Shown: piece after piece, positions 31,560 through 58,100 of the stretch | How positions within the stretch are numbered: position 1 is the stretch's first letter | How the letters are laid out: every line of letters starts with the position of its first letter | DNA from: Podarcis bocagei | Lineage: Eukaryota | DNA length: 64,000 nt | Assembly (NCBI GenBank): GCA_964188305.1 | Contig: OZ076892.1 | Direction: 5' to 3' (one strand) | Notes under the pieces: model-generated | Seen by the model: the letters and a program-made list of their open reading frames with translations, nothing else | Database searches by the model: none | What the model was told of the DNA's origin: nothing | Made by a program: the position numbers and the translations under genes

Positions 31560-34500
31560 TCAGTGCAGGGCACTGGGACTCGGCTCCTCAAAGGCCATTT
31601 TACCAAGCAGCTGCCCCTCAAGCTCTAGCCCACCCACTGGCAGTGGGAAGAAGTTCATCTCGGCTGCCAATGCAGCCATGGCCGAGGGGTCCTGGCCAAA
31701 CTGTGCCCGCAGCATCATGTCCATTTTCTCCAGCCGCCGCTTTAGCCTCTTGGCTTCACGCTCCCGGATGAGCCGAGCCTGCCGCTTCTCAGGGGTCTCG
31801 TTGGCCCGCTTGAGGCGCATCGCTTCACGGTCCCGCTGCAGGCGGCGCGCACGCTGCTCGTCCGTCTCCTGCATGCGCTGCAGCCGCTTGGCCTCTCGAT
31901 CCCTCATGCGCCTCACCTCCCGCTCCTCCGCCGTCTCGTTGTCTCGACGGCTCTTCTTAGCTGTGCGCTCTCGCTCCAGGCGCTGCAGCCGCACCTCCAG
32001 GGGCTCGTTCTGCCTTCGCAAGGCCCACTTGCGAACCCCTGGAGCTTGAGCTTCCAGAAGCTTGCGGTAGGCCACACAGCTGTTGCACACCAGGAGGATG
32101 CCAGCAGGATACACTGTGGGGCTGACAGCAGCAGCAGCAGCACCACCACCTGCTTTTTCCTCAGCACCAGAAGAAGCCTCAGGGAGGGGAATGGGCAGGG
32201 CATCTCCACACAGCACCTCTGACACCTTGTCACTGTGAAAGTCAAAGAGTAGAAATGACGGGTGGTCGGCACAGATCTTAAGAAGCCATTGTGTAGGCTT
32301 GCAAGCTACTGCCTTAGCTGTAACCCTCCCCCTCCCTCTGGCCATGCTTACAAGCCACCCCACCCACATGAATGCTGGCCTGCAGAATGCTTCTGGCTGG
32401 GGTCACCTATTCCAGCTGCCTCCAGAAATTGCCAGGTATAACCTCCATTGCTTCCATTGAACAGGGCCCCTCCAGGACTTCCAAAATGCAGCCTGGGCCA
32501 CATTGTCCCAGTCCCACCGTCAGAGATGCCCACTTCTCACCTGTTGAAAGTAGCATGGCTGGTGAAGCGAGCCCCACACACCGCACAGTTGGACAGTTGG
32601 TCCTCGGAGTGGATGAGGAGGTGCCTGCCCAAGGAGCCCGGGGAGCTGAGTGCTCGGCCACAGACGGGACACAGGTAGCTCTTGGCACTGACCACAGCTG
32701 CCGTATGCTGCAAACGAGGCCGGGCTGTGAGGCAAGGGCTCCGCCGCCCTGTCCCCCTCTCAGCTGTCCCTATGAGGGCTGGCAGCCAAGGCCAAGCCAC
32801 GGAAGAGCTCCCTCTTCTGTTAGGGAAAGAAGGAGAGAGACCCGCAAGGCCTTCCCTGGGATGTGGTTCAAACCCACCAGGGGGGATGATTCAAATTGCA
32901 TCCAATGCCAACAGCCCCTGCCCCCATCCCCACCCTTTCCCAGTCCAGGATTACTAATTTCAGCCTGGAAGGAAAGGGGGAGCCAGGGCAGGGATGGTTT
33001 AGCCTTGCGTGATGGTCTCATCAAAGCCCCCTCTAAGTACCTGATAGACGTGAGTGACAAGCTGCTCCCTGCTTCCACACTCTAGCTGGCAGAGGGGACA
33101 ACGGGAGAGTCCCATCAGGGTATCTGGGCTGGCATTTAAACCCATCTGCAAGCAAGGAAAAGCAGGCTAAGGAAACAGCAGAGGACAAGACCCATACCTG
33201 GTATTCTGCCACATGCATACACATACCCCTCCCCCCAACTAATGCTGCACCAGACCCTTTAAGACCATGTTGACGGATTCTCTACAATGTAAGATTAGCC
33301 CTGTGCAATCAGATTGAGGGTCTACCTAGTTGTGTATTGTCTTTCTAACACACAGCAGCCAACCAAATGCCTCTTCTGGGAAGCCCAGAATGAGATGACA
33401 ACAGCTCTATCACTCCCCTTGCCCCCATTACTATTAGGGAACTCTAATGCCAAAAAGTCCAGACCCAATCACTTGAGCCTGCTGCAGTGATCACTTGGAC
33501 ACATCAATGGACCAGGCCCAGGAATCCCAGAGTGGGCTATACAATCCTCTTTCTCCATGCTAGGGCCATCCAAGAGTCTGCTATTGCTATTCTCCCTTCC
33601 ACCGAGTAACCACAGCAGTGTTGCACTTTTGCTTTAGTATGTGTTGACTACGGCCAATGTGATGCACTTGCCTCATGGCCTCGAGCGACCTGCTTGCTGC
33701 AGCCCAGCTGCTCAGTAAGTTCCAGTTCCTTTTTCACTGTCGCTGATGCTCCGTCCTCCTCAGAAGCATGGGAGGAGACCTCATCTTGTGTTGTCTCATC
33801 CCCCTCGCTATCACCTGGAATACAGAACAGCTTTAGGCCTCTGCCACAGACCAGCTGACAGGATTCCAAAGCAGCATGCAGGTGTTTGGTCTCTCCCAGG
33901 TGTCCCAGAGCTGCCCTTGTGTACAAGATGGGGAAACTCACTGTTGCTGCTGCTGCTGCTACTGCTGCTGTTGGAGTCTTTTTCTTGTGGTGGAGGTGGC
34001 AGCTGCTGCATGAGTGGTGACTGGGCTCCAAGCAGCCCAGGGAAGTCTCTTCGCATCATGGCCTGACGTGTGTGCTCTTCTAACCCAGCAAAGACTTGCT
34101 CCCCTGGAAGTACAATGGGGGAGGAAGAAGCCGCATTAGCCCATTGCCCTTCCCAAGCCCAGTCATTCTTTGCCCCCTCCTCAGATGCCCAGTGATGGTC
34201 TCCCCTACCTGAAGATGGCCCAGAATGGGACTAATGCCTGGGCTCCATTCCCCAAAACAGCTTTCCCCAAACCCTTCCTGCAAAGCAACAGTGGCCTGAC
34301 CAATCCGTCCCTTCGCATCCTTTCCAACATGACCTGGAAATACAAATGTCTTCAGCAGCATTAAGCACACAGGAAGGGCTCTTGCCTGCCCTGGCTCCGC
34401 CCTAGAATTTGCATGTGCTCTCCCACCCCCCCCCGGGGCCCATATTTTGGAAGAGCTTGTCCTGCCATACAGGTTCTCCTCCAGGGGTAAAGCTGTTACA

Positions 34501-38139: not shown

Positions 38140-40873
38140 ATGTTAGGCTCTGGGTTCAAGGCCGAGCGCTTGCGAGTCAACCTACGACTTGTCATCAATC
38201 GCCTCAAACTGTTGGAGAAAAAGAAAAGTGAGTGGACTTTCCTACCTAATTCCTTGACCTCATCACCAGAGCAGTGATTCAGGAGGTTTCTGGTAGTCGT
38301 GGTGTCCCACAACACCATGTGCAGGCTATAAATTAAGAGATGCTTAATTTATAGCCTGCACATGTTGTTTCAGTGTATCCGAAGAAGTGTGCATGCACAC
38401 GGAAGCTTATACTACTCAGTTGGTCTCTAGGGTGCTACATTATAATTTTTAAATTCTTTTGGAAGGGTTCTTTTAAAGACTTCCTTAGATCATATAACTT
38501 TTTTGAAGACTTGATTTTTAAAGGGAGTTTTTAGGTTTTTAAGAAGAGTCTTTTTAACTATCTTTTAAAACAATTGTTTTAATTTATTTTGACATGTCAG
38601 AGTGTAAGTGTGGAATTGCTTGTGTGTGTGTACTGTATTTCAAAGATGCTGAGAATTGTGGTCATTGGGATGGGGGTGTGGATTCTGTGAAGAGTTCTTA
38701 GGTTTGTGGACTTGTGTCCAGTTATAGCCCCACTGTACTCATTGAATGGACATGGTTACTTAATTTCAATATGTCTATTCTGAGTATACCGTATTTTTCG
38801 CCCTATAGGATGCACCGTCCCATAAGGTGCACCTAGTTGTTTTTTTTTGGGGGGGGAATAAAGGAAAAAAATTATTCCCCTCCCCCAGGTGCGGGGCTGG
38901 GGCGGGGAAGCCCGAGCTTCCCCCGACCCCAGCCCCCAGAACAGGCAACTCTCCGCAAGCTGTGGGAGCCCAGCACCGGGCTCCCGCGCCTTGCGAAGAG
39001 CTGCGCGAAGTCTGGGCGCGCTGAGCTCAGCGCACCCAGGCTTCAGCATGCAGGCAACTCTCCGCAAGCCGTGGGAGCCCAGTGCTGGGCTCGCGTGCTT
39101 TGCGGAGAGCTGCGCGGAGCCTGGAGAGCAAGAGGGGTCGGTGTGCACCGACCCCTCTCGCTCTCCAGGCTTCAGCGAAAGCCTGTGTTCGCCCCATAGG
39201 ACGCACACACATTTCCCCTTCATTTTTGGAGGGGGGAAAGTGCGTCCTATAGGGCGAAAGATACGGTAACTTAGTTGGAGACAACCCACAGTCCTTCTTG
39301 GTGGAGCCCCTCTCTTTGCATACACAAACACCCCAGGCAGGGCCAGGGCAGGCTTGTGGGCCTCCCCTGCTGCCCCATGATGAACCCTTTTCTTGCAGCT
39401 GAGCTAGCCCAGAAGGCACGGAAGGAAATTGCTGACTACCTGTCTGCTGGCAAAGATGAGCGGGCTCGCATCCGTGTGGAGCACATCATCCGGGAGGACT
39501 ACTTGGTGGAGGCCATGGAGATCCTGGAGCTCTACTGTGACTTGCTTCTGGCACGCTTTGGCCTCATACAATCTATGAAGTAAGGTCTTGGCCTATGGGG
39601 AAGAGGGTGCTGGGTGCCTGCCACGTGTCCCCTCCCCTCGGTCTGCTAGGTCTGGGACCTATTTGTCCTCCTTGTCTTTCAACTACTTGTTCACTCTTGC
39701 CTTACTTTGTGTCCCTTCAGGGAGCTGGACTCCGGCCTGGCAGAAGCTGTCTCCACCCTCATCTGGGCTGCCCCCCGACTGCAAGCGGAGGTGGCTGAGC
39801 TGAAAATGGTGAGTAGTGCCAGTTGTGTCTTGGCAGGCTGCTCAGCCTTCCTGGACATCTGGGGGCAGCAGTTGGGAAAAGACTTTGATCTATCCTCACA
39901 GGATGCTCAGAGAACTTGGTGACTTTCTTGTTTGATCTGGGAGTTTAGGTTGGCTCCAGTCTCCAAACTCCTGAACCTTTTGTCCAGGGGTGCTGCGATA
40001 GTTGCTGTGCCCTGTCTTAAATAGAGGGGAGTCAGTGGTGCCTGGACTCTGTTTTGAGTGTGCCATTTCCATACTAGGTTGCTGACCAGCTCTGTGCCAA
40101 GTACAGCAAAGAGTATGGCAAGTTGTGCCGGAGCAACCAGATTGGGACCGTCAATGACAGGGTGAGTGGAATGGGAAGGGCATCATGAGGGTGAGATGGC
40201 GGTAAGGCTCTCAGGAGCTACTAACCACAATGGCTACGTCTTCCTCTGCTGTCAGAAGTGATCTGCTCCTGAAGTCAGTTGCTGGGAATCGCAGGTGAAG
40301 GAGAGCACTGCTGCTGCTCCACTCAGGGGCTTCTTGTTGGGGCATCCGTTTGGCCACTGTGAGGACAGGATGCTGGGCTAGACAGGCGGATCCAGCAGGC
40401 TGTTCTTATGGGAGGGAACGATATCAGTGCTTCATAAAGATGAGTTGTTTGCAGCAGGTGGTCCTGCCTGTGGTGCTTCACCAGGCAAGGTAGAAATTTA
40501 TCTTTTTTCTGGCTTGGATATCTCTTAGCTAGGTAAGTGTTCTTGACCTGCCCAGCTCAGTGAAGGGCTCACTCTTCCCTCCCTCCCTTCCAGCTGATGC
40601 ACAAGTTGAGCGTAGAGGCACCTCCCAAAATCCTAGTGGAGAGGTACCTGATTGAGATCGCAAAGAACTACAACGTGCCCTATGAGCCAGACTCCGTTGT
40701 CATGGTGAGTGAATGGGAGGCAGTTCCACTCTCAATTCCCTCAGTAGCAGCTCCCTTTCCCACATGTGACATCAGCTTCTTCCTCTTCCCAGGCTGAGGC
40801 TCCCGCAGGCGTGGAAGCTGACCTGATTGATGTGGGATTCGTGGATGATACAAAGAAAGGTGGCCGTGGAGGT

Positions 40874-40906
<33 letters not shown>

Positions 40907-43706
40907 TTCATGACCCCAATGGCTGGTCCTGATGGAGTTGTGCCAATGCCAATGCCCATGCCCATGCCGTCTCCAGCTCCCCCTTTTGCATACCCACCTC
41001 AAAAGGGACCAGTAAGTCCTATGTCTTGCTTGAAACAGGAGGGGAGTCTGTAAAGTTGGGATTGGGGGTGGTAGTGGGTGGGGGGGGGGAAAGGATAGCA
41101 GTCTACTGTGGTGAGTTAGCATCTGAGCACACCTCACTACCTGCTGTGTGAACAAGGTTTTCCAGCTGTTCTGGCAGGTATTGCCTATCTGATTCTGCCA
41201 TTAGGAAGGGGTGCTGGTCTGACTTAACAATTTCTCCCTTTAGGAGCACTTCAACGGGCTACCGGTGGGCACCTACCAGCCTTTCACCAGCCTTCACCCA
41301 CCTCAGATTCCAGCAACACCTCCAACATACGAGTCTGTAAGTACTGCTGATGAAAAACAAAAGCTGAATTGCTGGGAGGACAAGTCCTCTCTGCTGGGAC
41401 TGTTGCCGTCCCTAGTCTAGTGCTGGGTATTGGCAGGCCTTCCCACTTGGACTGACTGAGGAGTTGCCATCCACTGGATTTGGGCTTGCAGCAAACTTCA
41501 TGCACTTTTGATATGATTTTGATTTATTGCATTTCTATGTTGCTTTTCATCTCAAAGCAGCTTACAAACAATAAATAGCCATAACATAATAAAACATACT
41601 AGCATGTCGCAAATACAGCATACATCATATAAAATAATTAACAAATTATCAATAAAACATCAATAAAACCGTGGCAATCTATAAAAAACTTAACAGAACA
41701 GCAACTAAAAAATAAGCTAAACCTCACAATTACAGCAAGTCATGTGATTAACAAATCAATTCGGCATTTAGAATCTATAAAACAATATTAAAAACATTAA
41801 CAAAATAGCAATTAAAAATATAAACTAAGCACTAAGTTCATTCACACAGTCTCTGTACCCTCATGACTCATAATCTTTCACTCTGTTCAGTTCATTATAA
41901 TACACATAAATGCACATAATGTCAGATGTTGCACTGGCTGGGGTCCTCGAGTAGTGGGCCATGGTGGAGATGATGGGGCTCTTAGGCCTACCGCCAGTGG
42001 TAAGGTGGATGTTGACTGCCTAGGCATTGTTGAGGAGAAACTTGCCCAGGTCACTTTCAATAATCAGGAGTCCCATTCCCACTTGAGGAAGTCCAAGACA
42101 AGCCTGTCCCTCTGGAGCAGCGAGTGGCAATTGCACTTGGTTTAGAGCAGTGTTTCCCAACCTTGGGCCTCCAGCTGTTTTTGGACTACAACTCCCATCA
42201 TCCCTAGCTAGCAAGACCAGTGGTCAGGGATGATGGGAATTGTAGTTCAGAAACAGCTGGAGGCCCAAGGTTGGGAAACACTGGTTTAGAGGACGACCAG
42301 GAGGTCCAGCAGTGGCCCTGTAGCCTGTCCACCAGGAGCTGCTCCAGCTTCTTCAGCCGCACCTTGGTTGACATTGTGGTGGTGGAGGAGGCAGCCGCTG
42401 AGGGGATCGAGCAGGGCAGCTACTTGAGTCTACCAGGCAGGAGGGAGGGGCTGTGATAAAGATACCAAGGGAGCTTAGCATGATCTCAGCAGCCTGGATG
42501 AGCTTGCAGGCAGTGACTCAGAGGTTACCTTGGTCTCAGAGACCAGGCTGCTGCCCATGGAAAGCATGAGCGGAGGACATTGACCAGCAGGGGTAGAGGA
42601 TGAGATGTGGGGGTGGGCTGAGCAGCTAGAGAGTATGGAAATGGGGATGTGTCCACCTTCATGCCCTTTCGCTTGTTCAGCTACTGCTCTCCAGACTTCT
42701 GTGGTTGCTGGTGGTGGTGCTTCATGTCAGGTTGGTGAGACCGCCAGCGATGGTGAAGAGCTACTGCACCGTCAGGCCGTCCTTGGGGGACATAGCCAGG
42801 GCCGCTTGCTAGTCAGGTAGTCAGCCATGCTGAGCAGCTCTCCCTCACCTATGGCACCACCAGGCCAGGCTCACCACCACTGCTTCCTCCTCCAGATCCC
42901 TCATTTCCTCCTTCCTTCTGCTGTCTGGTCAGGCTGCATGAAGAAGATGGGAACACCAGATATGGTGCTTCTTCTGTGCAACTCTAGGGAGTTGTCAGGT
43001 GGTGGTTCTGTGTGGGGTGCTCCATGCAAAGCCAGCTTTTTTCTGTTTCAGATTGATGACATGGGTGCTGACAAGGAATTGCCATCCCCACAGGTGACCG
43101 GTGAGTGCAGGGCCGGAGGGGGAGGCTGTGGAGCTGGCAAGGCAGTGAGGAGGGAGGGAGGTGGTGATGTCAGGGGAAAGCTGGTGCTTGTGTTTATTGT
43201 TGGTCCCCTTCACTCTTGTGTTCGCTCTTGAGTTGCTGAGGTAAGCATGTGCCCATGTGTGTCTGTGTTGGGGCAGAGACTGGGACTCTTCATGGCAGAG
43301 AGCTTGGGCCCCTTTAGCAACTGGTAGGAGCTGCAAGGCTCAACTGAAGTGCAGCAAGTGCTCACTTCTGCAGGACATATACTAACTGTAGTACAGCAAA
43401 AAGAAGAATGGTCCTACCCCTGCCCCTACTACTGTTAGGTAGACTACTGTTTTCGCTGCCTTGAGCCTGCCCACTGCTTGTAACCAGTCACTCTTGTCTG
43501 CTGCAGGACCAGCCCCAAAGCCACAGCCGAGGGGGAGGCCACCAGCTGCAGTTCCTAGTTCGGGCGATAATTTTGTGCTGCCAGAGTTGCCATCTGTGCC
43601 AGACACGCTGCCTGCCGCTTCTGCTGGTGCCAACACTTCCGCCTCAGAAGACATTGACTTCGATGACCTCTCTCGAAGGTTTGAGGAACTGAAGAAGAAA
43701 ACTTAA
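38140..43706 (+). CDS. IST1: IST1 factor associated with ESCRT-III, 370 aa
   Basis: Starts MLGSGFKAERLRVNLRLVINRLKLLEKKK. Exons 38140-38227, 39399-39579, 39721-39808, 40078-40161, 40594-40704, 40793-41011, 41244-41336, 43052-43100, 43507-43706 total 1113 nt. Contains the ELYC motif, MPMPMP repeat, MIM2 VLPELPSVP and MIM1 DFDDLSRRFEELKKKT. AATAAA at 44547-44552. Confidence 0.98.
38365..38440 (+). mobile_element. Second Penelope-like fragment
   Basis: GTATCCGAAGAAGTGTGCATGCACACGGAAGCTTATAC..GTTGGTCTCTAGGGTGCTAC, homologous to the element at 37600. Confidence 0.7.
38789..39266. mobile_element. Tc1/Mariner-superfamily (Tc2/pogo-like) MITE
   Basis: TIR CCGTATTTTTCGCCCTATAGGA / TCCTATAGGGCGAAAGATACGG with TA TSD. 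CpG-rich, with an internal ~70-bp direct repeat at about 38942 and 39051. Confidence 0.88.
42078..42374 (-). pseudogene. CDC42BPB: Decayed copy of CDC42BPB (MRCK-beta) first coding exon, inside an IST1 intron
   Basis: Minus strand reads [16 protein letters not shown].. then, after a frameshift and with the MITE removed, LLDLLVVL*TKCNCHSLLQRDRLVLDFLKW. This resembles MRCK-beta [45 protein letters not shown]. It has a stop, a frameshift and a transposon insertion. Confidence 0.85.
42148..42283. mobile_element. hAT-type MITE (136 bp)
   Basis: Long TIRs CAGTGTTTCCCAACCTTGGGCCTCCAGCTGTTT and a perfect 8-bp TSD GTTTAGAG (42140-42147 / 42284-42291). Confidence 0.93.
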
Positions 43707-46161: not shown

Positions 46162-49100
46162 TTATATGTGAACTGGGATCCTGAGGGGTGGCTGCGGCAC
46201 AAGCAGCTTCTCATGAAGGCTTAATTGCTTGAAGCTTGGCTGGTGGCTGGTCATGAGCAGCACCAGCCGCTTGGGCTTACACCTACCTTGGCAGCCTTCA
46301 TCTCCCGACTGAAGGTCGTCAAAAGGGCAGAGACAAACAGGTTGATGATCACAAACACCATGGAGATGACGCTGGTCACAATCAGCACAGCGCCAAACAC
46401 GGGGTCCACAGCAATGACCTAAGCATGAAGAGCACAGTTATGTCCCCTGTGTCTACATATGCACATAGCAGAGAGCTGTTGGCCGTGCTGTGCTTTGCAG
46501 GGCACAGGGAAGCATGTCATTCTAGACCCAGAAAGCTGAAATCCATGCAGGTCTCTCTGGGTGCTGAGCTGGGAGCTGAATGGGGCTGGGGGTCTGTTGC
46601 GATCTGTGGTGTCCTGGAAGGGCAGCCTGGCAGTGTGCCTCGGCCTAAAGTGGGGCTGCATGGCACTCACCTCTTCATAATTAAAGATTCCAATGAGAAG
46701 CCCTACGATGGTCACAGCTGAGTTAAAGAAGGTCTTGTAGTCATCTACGCTCCATCCAAACATGAGGTTGCACTGATGGCAAGAAAGTGAAGGTGATGTA
46801 GGGGGAGGGGTATAAGGACACAGGAAGGGGGGGCTCTTCCCTCCGCCCTTGGTTGGTTTCCCTGCAGTTGGCAGGTCTCTTCTTACCACAATGGCGTAAC
46901 CCACAAGTAGCACCAGAAGTGTGAGCAGGAAGCCCAGGACCTCATCCCAGGCTTTCTGCAGTGTCTGTGTGATGAGGTGCATTCTGGGATTTAGGCGCAG
47001 GAGGTTCCACAGCTTGATGGTTGTCAAGGCCACCAGAAAAGCAATGAGGTATGTCAGAGCAGAGTCAACTTCCACCATCTCATAGAAGCTGATGAACCTG
47101 GCAGGGGTGTGGAGGGAGATTTGCTTTAGCGTGTGTGAAAGCCGCCTCTGCTGAGTGGGGGCCTGCCCCTGCCCCTTGTTTCGGATGGTAGACACTCACT
47201 TGTTGCGGTCTTGGCGATGCTGCTTCAGGATGCCTTCTGCCAGCACGCGCCTCTTCACATAAAGGCCAATAGCTGCCACACTTATGAGGATGGTGCTGGC
47301 ATCCAGAAGGTTTCTCTTGCTGCTGAAGTACTTCCACTTCTGCTGCTTCACCTGCCGGCCCTGCTGGCCCCATGGAAGAAGCAGGCTTGACTCAGGCAGC
47401 CACATGTTGGGGGGGGGGGAATGCAAGTGGAAGGAGCAGTGGTGGTGTGATGCTCTTTCTCTGGCAATACAGCAACCTCCACAAACCACCACCCTCTAAA
47501 ACAGCCTTTCTCATCCTTGGGTCCCCAGATGCTTTTGGCCTACAACTCCCATCGTTCCTAGCTAGCAAGGCCAGAGCTCAGGGATGATGGGAGTTATAGT
47601 CCAACAACATCTGGGGACCCAAGGTTGACACTGCCCTAAAACAAGGGTGGGATGACACTCCTGCGGCACTCCAGGTGTTGCTGGAATCCAAATGCCCAAC
47701 TGCTCTAGGCAGCCAATGGCAATGGTCAGGAATGATGGGAGCCTAGCAGCACCCAGAGGGCCCACCGCAGGTTCTACATCTCTGCTCCCCTGAGCTGGTA
47801 CTGGCTGATACCTCCCACTAACCCTAGGCACCTTGAGAGTGCTGTCTAAAGCTGATGGAAGTTGTAGTCCAGCAATATCCAGAGGGTGCTAGGCTAAGGA
47901 AACTAAGCTGCCTCACAGAGGCCCTGCTCACCTGCACAAAGATGTAATATAGTATGAGCAGGAGAAAGGTGATCTGGGCACAGATAAATTGGAGGACGAG
48001 CTGAAGGTCTGGATAGAGGCGCAGAATTTGCAGCTCCGATTTGCTGAACAAGGCCCCTGCCACAGAAACAGGCACAGGGTCAAGTATGGAGGCTGCAAGC
48101 AAGGCTGGCTTCCAGGGAGAGGGAACACCTTTTCTCCTCCTCCTCCCTCCCCAACAGCCCCAGGACAGCCATCCTGCCTCTGAGGCCCATTGCAGGGCTA
48201 GGCCCCCTTTGTCTCTACTACACGCTCTTGCCTATCCCATTGGCCTCCAAGACCAGCGTGACTGCGCAGAAGAGGTTGACATTTGCATTGTAGACAACAA
48301 ACTCAATGAAGACGACTCGTGTGCTTTTGTCCAGCCAGTTGTTCCGTTCCAGATAGCGAAGGGTTCTGGTGGGAATGGTGCAGAAAAAAGTTATATTGTG
48401 TATCCACCTTGCAGTGGGAGAGAATTCTAAGGGCTGTACCTAAATCTACTGGCAGCAGGGGAAGAGAAACACAACTCTAGTTTACTATTGCATGCCCTGC
48501 CCAGTTGATCAGTTCTCCCCCAAGTACCACCTGCCAGACTTCAGCTAGCAGTGCCATATTCACTACTGTTAGCCAGGACTGTGGGTCTTTAGCTTTCACC
48601 TACCCTCTCCCACAGCTTCACCAGATCAGGAGATAGTGGGCAGAGACTGAGATACACCTGCCCAGAAAGAGCCCCTGGAGCTTTCAGTACCTGATGCCTG
48701 TTCTGCAGCTCCCTCAGTCCACATACCTCCAGGCGTAGCTTTTGTTTCTGCCAAGGTTTGCCAGGTAGCCGCTTCCCGGATAGAGAGCAAACTTCCCCCA
48801 GATGGGGTACTCTTGCAGGGTGCTCTCATTCTGGAAGACCCAGGCACTCGCCTGACCTCTCCCTTCAGCAGGAGGCCCCCAGCTGGCCGTGGGACCCTGC
48901 TTTCCCTCTTGGAGTGGGAGAAAAGCTGGCCCTGGCTTTGGTGGGGCTCCTGTGGCTCGGATCTGCCGTAGCCGCACGCTGCCCACAAGGAAAGAGTTTC
49001 CATCCATGGCCAAACCTGGAAGATTGAGAGAGGGGAGAAATGTGCTGCTTAGAAGCAAAACACACAGACACACACCTGTTTGTACAGATGTGAAAAGCTG

Positions 49101-55100: not shown

Positions 55101-58100
55101 CCTGGCAGCACAACCCCATGGCATGGGAGGACTAGGTATGCCAGCTGCAGCGTCCCTTCGCCTACTAGCATCTGATAAGGTCTGGTGCTGCCAACGGACT
55201 CTCCCACGCCAGTCGTGTGCTTCCAACCTCCTCCTTGCCTGGCATCCCAGTTGCTGTCTGGTTCGCTCTAACCCCACCCTCTTGGCCCCCACCCTCAGCC
55301 CTCGCTGGGCCATGGACTTACCAGCTGGGGTTGGGCCCAGTGTTGTTGTGCCAGAGGCGGATGGCGTGGAGGTTGCCCAGGGACTTCTGAGTGGCAAGGA
55401 GGAAGGCATCCCGCCCACCTCGCTCAAAGGAGGGCCCCTGGGGGTGCTGTAGCAGGTGTGGCTCGCTCCGGCCCTCTGCCCCATAGAGGGTCAGGATAAC
55501 CTCAAGCCAAGGAGGGAGAAGGGGTCAATCAAGGAAAGGGAAAAGAGGGCGGATGCTGGGTGGGGTTCATGGATTGCTTCCTTTCCTCAGTTCCTTGCCC
55601 AAGCAGGGAGCACATGAAGGATGTCATCAAAGACAGGCTTTTGCATGCAGCCAGTCACACAGAAGCCTGCACCCCACACACCCACTCCCCGATAGGGAGA
55701 GATCTGCCAGACTCGGCCCAGATTCTGTGGGCAGGTGCCTGAGGTCACGGAACTTGATGGGCAGCACTTGTACCATCAACAGTACAAAGTGGGCCTGCAG
55801 GGAAGTAAGACCCTCCCCTACCTTAGCAGAGGTCCCAGCCCCTCGGCGGTAGCCTGTGAAGACTTGCACCAGGTAAGGGAAGCAGGCGGTGGCCTCATTA
55901 TCTGCTAGGATTGTGACCTTCACCTGGAGGGGGGAGAGACACACATGGGGTGGGTGGCCCTAGAAATGGCCAAGCCCCACTTCAGCAAGTCAGCTTTTCC
56001 AGGGTGTCTGGCTCTCAGCTGTTTGCTGAATAAATATCTCATACCCTAAAAAGACGGTGTAAAATGTCTTCTCTCATGACCCGTTTGCATTTCCAATGAA
56101 AAACTTTCATTGTTCCTCATTTCAGCACATCAGACAAGAAGGGCCTGAATGAGGGCAGATGGGGGGTGGGTGTCTCTGGCCTGCAAATGCTAATAACCCC
56201 AAACCACCATCATAAATCTTTTGCTTGCCCTTTCCCCTCACCTTCTTAGCATCCGTTCTCTGTCTCCATCGAGCCCAAACGAGGGCAGCTCCATAGCCCA
56301 GCAACAAGCTGCTTAGCAAGGCCAGCCCAGAAGGGTTCTGGCCCACGGTGCTCAGGAGCTTTGCAGTGTTGTGAAGGTCAATCAGGTGTGGCAGGACCAA
56401 GGCGACGCACCCAAAGAAGGTGAGGTGGTTGCACAAGCACTGGGTGCTGTGGAGGGTGCTTTGGGAGCCCACCTGGGAGGGAAGCACTGATGCATTAGAA
56501 ACCAACACAGGAGGATGAGGTCCCAATAGTTCTGCTCCATTTGGTTCCCCATGACATTCCGCCCTACGTTTTTTTTCTCCCAGCATGGAAGCAAAGGCTT
56601 GCTTGCCTGCCCTGCAGCCCTCTGCCCTGGTTGACCCTACTGCATACCCGACATCCATCACTTCTCCAGGCATGCTGCTGGCTGGACCAGTAGTAGCATC
56701 CAGAGATGATGGTGTGAATGGAGAGGTTCCAGGGGCCCTGAGAGAGGGGAGCCACCTCTGCAGAGATGTAGTAGGTGCCCAGGCCATGATGCTGCAGCTC
56801 CTCTGGAGGAATCACCCATGTGTAGGTACCCTCTGAAGCAAGAGCAGTGAGTCAAAGAGAGCAGAGAGGGACCACACCCACTGACCTCACCCACACCTTC
56901 CTCCACTGGGGGACACAGTCCTGCCTGGCCCCAGCTCCTCAAGCCCCTCCCTCTGTGCCTACTCCCAGGTGCACAGATTTAAATCAAAGTGGTTTGGTCA
57001 ATTATGTAAATGAAGAAACGGGCTGATTTAACTAAGCGATTTAAATCAAATTTCCCATTGATGTTTCCCACAGTGCAAATCTGACCACTACACCATGTTA
57101 ATTTGCAATTAAATGAATTTAATGGGCAATTAAATAATTGAAACACAGCTGATTCAATCTGTATACTTTTGCAACTTTCCCTTTTTATTTATAGAGGTAA
57201 ATTGTTCCCATATAGCAGGCTTCCTCAAACTCAGCCCTCCAGATGTTTTTGGCCTACAACTCCCATGATCCCTAGCTAGCAGGACCAGTGGTCAGGGATG
57301 ATGGGAACTGTAGTCTCAAAACATCTGGAGGGCCGAGTTTGAGGAAGCCTGCCAAACAGGTCATGTCTTATGGCTGAAACCCAGAACAGCAGGTGAAGTT
57401 AACACCTCAAAGCTATGCCCACTTACCTGAGAGTTACCTCACTGAACTCCAATGAGACTTACTTTTAAGGGGATACATGCAGCACTGTGTTGTATTTATG
57501 AGCATAAGAAGAACCTGCTGCATCAGGCCAATGGCCATTCTAGTCCAGCACTATTCTCCTAGAGGTCAGTCAGATGCTCCAATAGGAAGTCCCAAAGCAG
57601 CACCTGCCCTCTAGCTTCCTTCTAACAAGTCCTCACCCTCTTGCCATCCGCTGCTGGGCAGGGTGGTGTTGAGGAGGCTTCTGTTCTTGTTGGGCTCAGG
57701 TTGGAGGCCCAGGTGCAAGGTGATCTGGACCACTGTGCTGGATTCCACCGATACTAGCAGGGCATCCTCTACTGATGTGATGTTTACCACAATGTCAAAG
57801 TTCCTGACGTTGCCAGTCAAGTGAGTGTGAGGGGCCTCAGCACTAGCCTCAGCACTGAGCCCAATCTGGAAGCAGACAGAATGCCTATGGTCAGCCCTGC
57901 AGTCCGTCCGTCCCCCCACTGGTCCTTGAGCACATATTGTCTCCCATCAGGCCATACAGCACAAAGTGCTTATTTCTGATCCAGAGCTGGACCTTGGACA
58001 GCGCTGCTTCTCCATGCCACTTGGGTGCTGAGAGAAGAGTCTCCCTGATGAGAGAACGTCCCAGTACAGTATCCATTCTCACCTCTATTTCCTCTGTAAG

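Follow-up and report, generated by a model that had tools for sequence, protein, structure and literature searches.

A probable chimeric retrocopy of CDC42BPB exon 1, an OTUD1 coding fragment and an abundant repeat, antisense in an IST1 intron of the lizard Podarcis bocagei

Splicing of a gene's first exon onto a retroelement has been described in the human family SVA_F1, which carries exon 1 of MAST2, and in the chimpanzee family pt_SVA_D6, which carries exon 1 of STK40 (PMC6139936). Both donors are serine/threonine kinase genes with GC-rich first exons, and each family comprises approximately 84-94 copies (PMC6139936). In this study, we report the analysis of a stretch of 64,000 nucleotides (nt) from Podarcis bocagei (contig OZ076892.1 of assembly GCA_964188305.1; the window), in which the first coding exon of CDC42BPB, the gene for MRCK-beta, is present as a decayed copy, antisense in an intron of IST1. 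The exon copy is one part of a mosaic drawn from three sources, the others being a fragment of the coding region of the deubiquitinase gene OTUD1 and the 3' portion of a repeat. The mosaic is enclosed by a single target-site duplication (TSD), its internal junction is common to paralogues, and its copy number declines in the 5' direction. We consider it, with a probability of about 0.8, to be a dead, non-coding chimeric retrocopy that belongs to a small, old lacertid family and derives from a three-part hybrid RNA.

The insert, its parts in the order of their own reading direction, and its borders are as follows (positions in the window).

41509-42656, minus strand: the chimeric retrocopy in its entirety, 1148 nt long, of which 1004 nt remain when a later miniature inverted-repeat transposable element (MITE) and its TSD are subtracted; bounded by a TSD, with depth changes at both ends.
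42657-42669: 5' copy of the TSD, CTTCATGCCCTTT on the plus strand.
42375-42656, minus strand: leader resembling a 5' untranslated region (5'UTR), GC-rich and CpG-poor (CpG observed/expected 0.16), at 2-4 times single-copy depth, ending at the TSD.
42292-42374, minus strand: 5' half of CDC42BPB exon 1, with MRCK-beta residues 1-16 as top match, then a frameshift and ..LLDLLVV.
42140-42291: hAT-type MITE with its two 8-bp TSD copies; the MITE itself at 42148-42283, with terminal inverted repeat CAGTGTTTCCCAACC, and the TSD CTCTAAAC at 42140-42147 and 42284-42291.
42078-42139, minus strand: 3' half of CDC42BPB exon 1, TKCNCHSLLQRDRLVLDFLKW, with MRCK-beta residues 40-59 as top match, ending in TGG G.
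42017-42077, minus strand: 61-nt interval separating exon 1 from the proven OTUD1 fragment; crossed by paralogous contigs that extend into exon 1.
41951-42016, minus strand: OTUD1 coding fragment, C-terminal part of the OTU domain, VNIHLTTGGRPKSPIISTMAHY (PDB 4bop, E 1.8e-5; 22 RNA reads of the sister species).
41909-41950, minus strand: linker of unassigned source, part of the family unit at approximately 12 times depth; no protein or RNA family match.
41509-41908, minus strand: AT-rich high-copy repeat tail, 26-29% GC, with AATAAA (reverse complement at 41523-41528) and 14 nt of decayed A-rich end.
41496-41508: 3' copy of the TSD, CTTCATGCACTTT on the plus strand and AAAGTGCATGAAG in insert orientation; single-copy depth below 41509.

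The limits of the insert are marked by a 13-nt direct repeat, CTTCATGC[A/C]CTTT on the plus strand, whose copies at 41496-41508 and 42657-42669 agree at 12 of 13 positions, a result reached in 0 of 2000 shuffles of the end regions. The lower copy directly adjoins the A-rich end of the insert, where AATAAA stands 14 nt before the 3' TSD and is followed by a decayed A-rich stretch (tcaaaatcatatca + AAAG). The upper copy coincides with a drop in contig depth from 2-4 times to single copy (bins to 42649 versus bins from 42650). Inverted repeats were sought at the insert ends, 41509 and 42656, and none were found. Since the leader, exon 1, the OTUD1 fragment and the repeat tail all lie within a single TSD, the mosaic entered as one piece of complementary DNA. 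The leader that was brought in with the exon measures 282 bp, and single-copy native intron begins at 42657, behind the TSD; the 5'UTR of approximately 550 bp that had been proposed from the bare sequence (the original prediction) is thus too long, its remaining 300 nt or so being native intron.

The exon-1 copy occupies 42078-42374 of the minus strand. Its ATG (42374-42372) opens a reading of 16 residues that ends in a frameshift, beyond which, when 42148-42291 is removed, local translation gives LLDLLVVL*TKCNCHSLLQRDRLVLDFLKW. The two stop-free pieces of the exon were searched separately against the 177,635 sequences of the PDB, and the joined sequence lacking the MITE was translated locally only. 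The best match of the 5' piece was MRCK-beta residues 1-16 (E 0.22) and that of the 3' piece MRCK-beta residues 40-59 (E 0.55). Both pieces matched MRCK-beta chains only, and did so colinearly, with LLDLLVVL between them in a shifted frame. Taken singly each match is weak, and it is on their agreement as sequence that we judge two independent, colinear picks of MRCK-beta not to be chance. The decayed MRCK-beta exon first recognised on this strand from the bare sequence is thereby upheld. A word-index protein search with the exon-1 open reading frame (ORF) and the OTUD1-like piece gave no match; this search sees only proteins of similar length and is uninformative here.

The likeness to MRCK ends where it had been said to end, at TGG G, the last G being 42078. 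No GT intron follows, as claimed; after TGG G come AATGGGAC.. and the OTUD1 fragment. Downstream of 42078 none of the searched pieces gave an MRCK match, which agrees with the stated absence of MRCK exon 2 and leaves the alternative of an internally deleted CDC42BPB retrocopy unsupported. TGG G is the presumed end of exon 1 in lizard CDC42BPB, by analogy with genes of the MRCK/DMPK/ROCK family. A literature search on the CDC42BPB exon-1 boundary and on OTUD1 gene structure yielded nothing usable.

The sequence beyond the exon had been described as a coding-like stretch without a name and attributed to a CDC42BPB transcript. Its coding origin stands, and it is a fragment of OTUD1, not an exon of CDC42BPB. 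A stop-free piece of 52 residues (41864-42019, minus strand) matches the OTU domain of OTUD1 (PDB 4bop_A, residues 104-131, E 1.8e-5), with 20 of 28 residues identical between the copy, VNIHLTTGGRPKSPIISTMAHY, and 4bop, VNIHLTTGGRLESPTVSTMIHY. Bulk RNA of the sister species (organism D) adds 22 reads, with 18 start places, which are confined to approximately 41958-42010. All 22 have the first mate on the plus strand and carry the same ten fixed differences from the copy. Application of these ten letters changes the peptide to VNIHLTTGGRPESPTVSTMVHY; half of the letters leave the amino acid as it was, and those that alter an amino acid shift it towards human OTUD1 (three match, one is conservative). 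Because the fixed differences are silent or directed towards OTUD1, the reads are attributed to live OTUD1 messenger RNA that cross-maps onto a decayed coding copy. Such reads on 41958-42010, at approximately 82% identity, are mistakable for expression of the intronic copy when low likeness thresholds are used.

The OTUD1 frame is shifted relative to the MRCK frame, so that the hybrid RNA, as read now, encoded no fusion protein. GTPDY, which appears in another frame of the downstream stretch and had been linked to the MRCK activation segment, is not such a remnant, as its frame crosses the OTUD1-derived stretch in a region devoid of MRCK matches; on this sequence context we treat the motif as chance. 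The 61 nt at 42017-42077 gave no PDB or Pfam match, whether as 22-aa or as 41-aa pieces; they may represent OTUD1 coding sequence from slightly upstream of the matched part, with a deletion between. Pfam likewise matched none of the stop-free pieces from either strand of the downstream stretch.

Other identities considered for the downstream stretch were set aside. A Roadblock/LAMTOR-like peptide was dropped when the PDB search gave OTUD1. A match to bL21m in another frame (E 0.019, proline/serine-rich) is regarded as chance, the OTUD1 frame being far stronger and having RNA support. P0001, the sole match of the 52-aa piece in an exhaustive representative search, is a tandem-repeat protein whose four repeats inflate the score, and is not OTUD1.

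The copy is not the single fossil that the original prediction had supposed. Contigs of two DNA runs, one from the window species (organism A) and one from the sister species, were mapped at 80% likeness, the IST1 exons being left out of the mapping of reads and contigs. In the contigs of both species there are approximately 5-25 scattered paralogous copies, on the order of ten to twenty, at least two of which cross the same exon-1/OTUD1 junction. Relative to single copy, depth is approximately 9-23 times over 41909-42136, approximately 13 times over 42308-42364, 2-4 times over the leader and 70-190 times over the tail. The tail, 41509-41908, belongs to an abundant repeat, of which it forms the 3' part: in the DNA run of the window species itself its depth is 900-2500, where single-copy sequence has approximately 13, and the sister species gives similar values. 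At 42071/42072, some 70 nt from the MITE, other letters occur in 10-12 contigs of organism A and in 15 of organism D, at a depth of 175 versus 13, and 41973-41993 is covered by 10-16 variant contigs (up to 18 in organism D). Contigs of 1037 and 3669 nt from organism A, and their counterparts from organism D, maintain approximately 80% identity over 41921-42136 and so run across the junction at 42078.

A shared junction, with copies thinning out in the 5' direction, is the pattern of repeated retroposition with 5' truncation. The junctions of the insert in the IST1 intron are covered by contigs of organisms A, D and G, and this, together with the similar copy numbers in A and D, indicates that both the family and the insert predate the split of the species. 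The 16-20% divergence between copies marks the family as old; an age of tens of millions of years is a rough guess. Certain paralogues join approximately 41910 to approximately 42060, and one joins 41818 to 42061; the proven OTUD1 fragment would be absent from them, and they would be either a subfamily without the fragment or copies in which it was replaced.

The element that splits the exon is a hAT-type MITE of 136 bp (42148-42283) with 63-nt arms that are 92% complementary, and its TSD lies in the L-*(Y)-T codons. DNA contigs that join 42137 to 42282, skipping exactly 144 nt, derive from copies, or from the parent gene, that lack the MITE. Further MITE copies occur in the window at 47493-47645 and 57211-57346, and when 41400-43400 was compared with the window by self-BLAST the MITE alone recurred. 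Its summed contig depth reaches 1-2.5 million versus approximately 13 for single-copy sequence, and it is abundant in RNA too. The terminal inverted repeats, the TSD and the copies in window and contigs bear out the earlier description of a hAT MITE with an 8-bp TSD in the L-Y-T codons, and the MITE is a later insertion into the chimeric retrocopy. An Rfam scan of the intron returned weak microRNA-like matches on the MITE hairpin only, the best being mir-5408 at 50.8 bits with a cut-off of 90; on this sub-threshold match, the MITE may belong to a family that seeds microRNA-like hairpins in lizards.

No sign of function was seen for the chimeric copy, which has stops and frameshifts throughout and a CpG observed/expected ratio of 0.16-0.26. 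In the RNA run of the sister species, 12% of which was read, barely any reads fell on the exon-1 halves and none on the leader. Those elsewhere on the insert showed several to many differences (1-10 in the cleanest), and on account of these they look like cross-mapping from OTUD1 and from other repeat copies.

The parent of the family would have been a hybrid RNA made up of the CDC42BPB 5'UTR and exon 1, an out-of-frame OTUD1 coding fragment, and the 3' part of the AT-rich repeat with its AATAAA. L1-like target-primed reverse transcription into a nick in the IST1 intron would have produced the 13-bp duplication, a length within the approximately 7-20 bp usual for that mechanism. Decay by frameshifts, stop codons and CpG loss would have followed, and then the split by the hAT MITE. 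How exon 1 and OTUD1 sequence were first joined is the less firm part of this account. On our analysis we lean, by a modest measure, towards a splicing event that linked the donor site of exon 1 with an acceptor inside an OTUD1-like retrocopy or a repeat, in which case an acceptor AG would precede AATGGGAC/CTCCTGATT. The OTUD1-like retrocopy and the repeat perhaps lay in CDC42BPB intron 1, and the RNA would then end at the AATAAA of the repeat. The GC-rich first exon may have aided transcription of the source copies.

The join could instead have arisen by a template switch, in which a LINE reverse transcriptase working on a repeat/OTUD1 RNA jumped to a CDC42BPB transcript, with renewed copying of the mosaic at a later time. 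Three unrelated sources with short unassigned linkers, fused out of frame, are what such a jump might leave. It remains a doubtful explanation: the break falls at the presumed exon-1 end of the MRCK/DMPK/ROCK genes, where a switch would have fallen only by chance, and switches usually enter the second RNA at its 3' terminus and not internally. It is the position of the break at a presumed exon end that makes us prefer splicing. The original prediction had gone further along the splicing route and seen the fossil of a CDC42BPB isoform, alternative or read-through, with a second exon from the CDC42BPB locus itself. Its core, a chimeric retrocopy, is retained on the strength of the absent intron after the exon, the single 13-bp TSD round the mosaic, and the AATAAA with its A-rich end. 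An isolated isoform fossil shares these retrocopy features and the break at an exon end, and we nevertheless think it unlikely, as the copy is not unique and no read in the 12% of the sister-species RNA run that was read crosses the junction. Moreover, of the downstream part, for which a repeat origin had been named as counting against the proposal, 41510-41908 is high-copy repeat and the nearer stretch OTUD1 coding sequence. The isoform would hold if an OTUD1-like retrocopy and repeat sit in CDC42BPB intron 1, and it survives only as this sub-case, with exon 1 spliced into them.

A DNA-level capture of the exon, whether through a cut-and-paste transposon (Pack-hAT) or through segmental duplication, has the presence of a hAT MITE within the chimera in its favour. 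The MITE, however, sits inside the exon with an 8-bp TSD of its own and is missing from other copies. The unit as a whole ends without inverted repeats and has a TSD of 13 bp, not 8 bp; beyond the exon there is neither promoter nor intron DNA, and the AATAAA with the A-rich end is present. This reading is largely refuted, and we regard it as very improbable.

Several points weigh against the chimeric retrocopy as preferred here. A poly(A) tail is hardly discernible, the 13-nt TSD contains one mismatch, and the OTUD1 match spans only some 22-28 residues. Contig depth is a rough measure of copy number only, and the two exon-1 bins beside the million-fold MITE are possibly inflated by spill-over. 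The family is heterogeneous, some paralogues skipping 41911-42059. Finally, both the end of exon 1 in lizard CDC42BPB and the acceptor on the OTUD1 side are putative, and splicing is a proposal.

The window also contains ATXN1L (AXH domain), IST1 (Pfam Ist1, E 9e-23) and a polycystin-channel gene, and has no N. IST1 lies on the plus strand, with the Pfam Ist1 match on an exon upstream of the host intron, 41337-43051, which is 1715 bp long and carries the chimera in antisense, as had been predicted. Two IST1 coding exons frame it.

41244-41336, plus strand: IST1 coding exon, ..EHFNGLPVGTYQPF..PPTYES, with a gtaagt donor after it; forms the host intron's lower border.
43052-43100, plus strand: next IST1 coding exon, IDDMGADKELPSPQVT, with an ag acceptor and a gtgagt donor; upper border of the host intron.

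A further IST1 exon, 40766-41053 (plus strand), includes a run of approximately 15 glycines and an (MP)n repeat (..KKGGRGGGGGGGGGGGGGFMTPM..MPMPMPMP..); these low-complexity tracts seem longer than those of mammals. Between ATXN1L and IST1 lies a 269-aa ORF (31560-32369, minus strand) rich in RE/RR repeats (..RDREAKRLQRMQETDEQRARRLQRDREAMRLKR..), which, from gene order alone, we take to be probably a ZNF821-like exon.

The value of the locus is descriptive, as it is a decayed intronic retrocopy without sign of function. The present analysis contributes the assignment of the joined stretch to OTUD1, the TSD with the true limits of the insert, and the copy-number profile. A chimeric retrocopy formed from a hybrid RNA is a known kind of event. 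With an ordinary processed pseudogene the chimera shares the lack of an intron, the TSD, the poly(A) signal, 5' truncation among copies and neutral decay, and it differs in that only exon 1 of the parent is present, fused to an OTUD1 fragment and a repeat. The L1-mediated template-switch chimeras of the U6/L1 type are likewise mosaics of unrelated RNAs within one TSD that end in a poly(A) signal. As a rule each of those stems from one event and has a small RNA as its 5' part, whereas the lizard 5' part is a messenger RNA leader with exon 1 and its junction recurs at several loci.

SVA_F1 and pt_SVA_D6 resemble the lizard family in having many composite copies, leaders of variable length and insertion by the LINE machinery with TSDs. 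They differ from it in number and age, the lizard copies being approximately 5-25 (versus 84-94), much older and all seemingly decayed. The recipients differ too, since in the lizard an OTUD1 coding fragment with an AT-rich repeat tail takes the place of an SVA, and there splicing is inferred and a promoter role putative. First-exon capture by retroposition, known in hominid SVAs, thus made a small family in lizards too. A closer correspondence is conceivable, though we hold it improbable: the family would then be a third independent case of a kinase CpG-island first exon spliced onto a non-autonomous retroelement, with an internal promoter that enabled amplification. Such a counterpart would point to a general way for vertebrate retroelements to acquire promoters, and if master copies under the control of the captured exon gave rise to the family, the principle of SVA_F1 would extend beyond primates.

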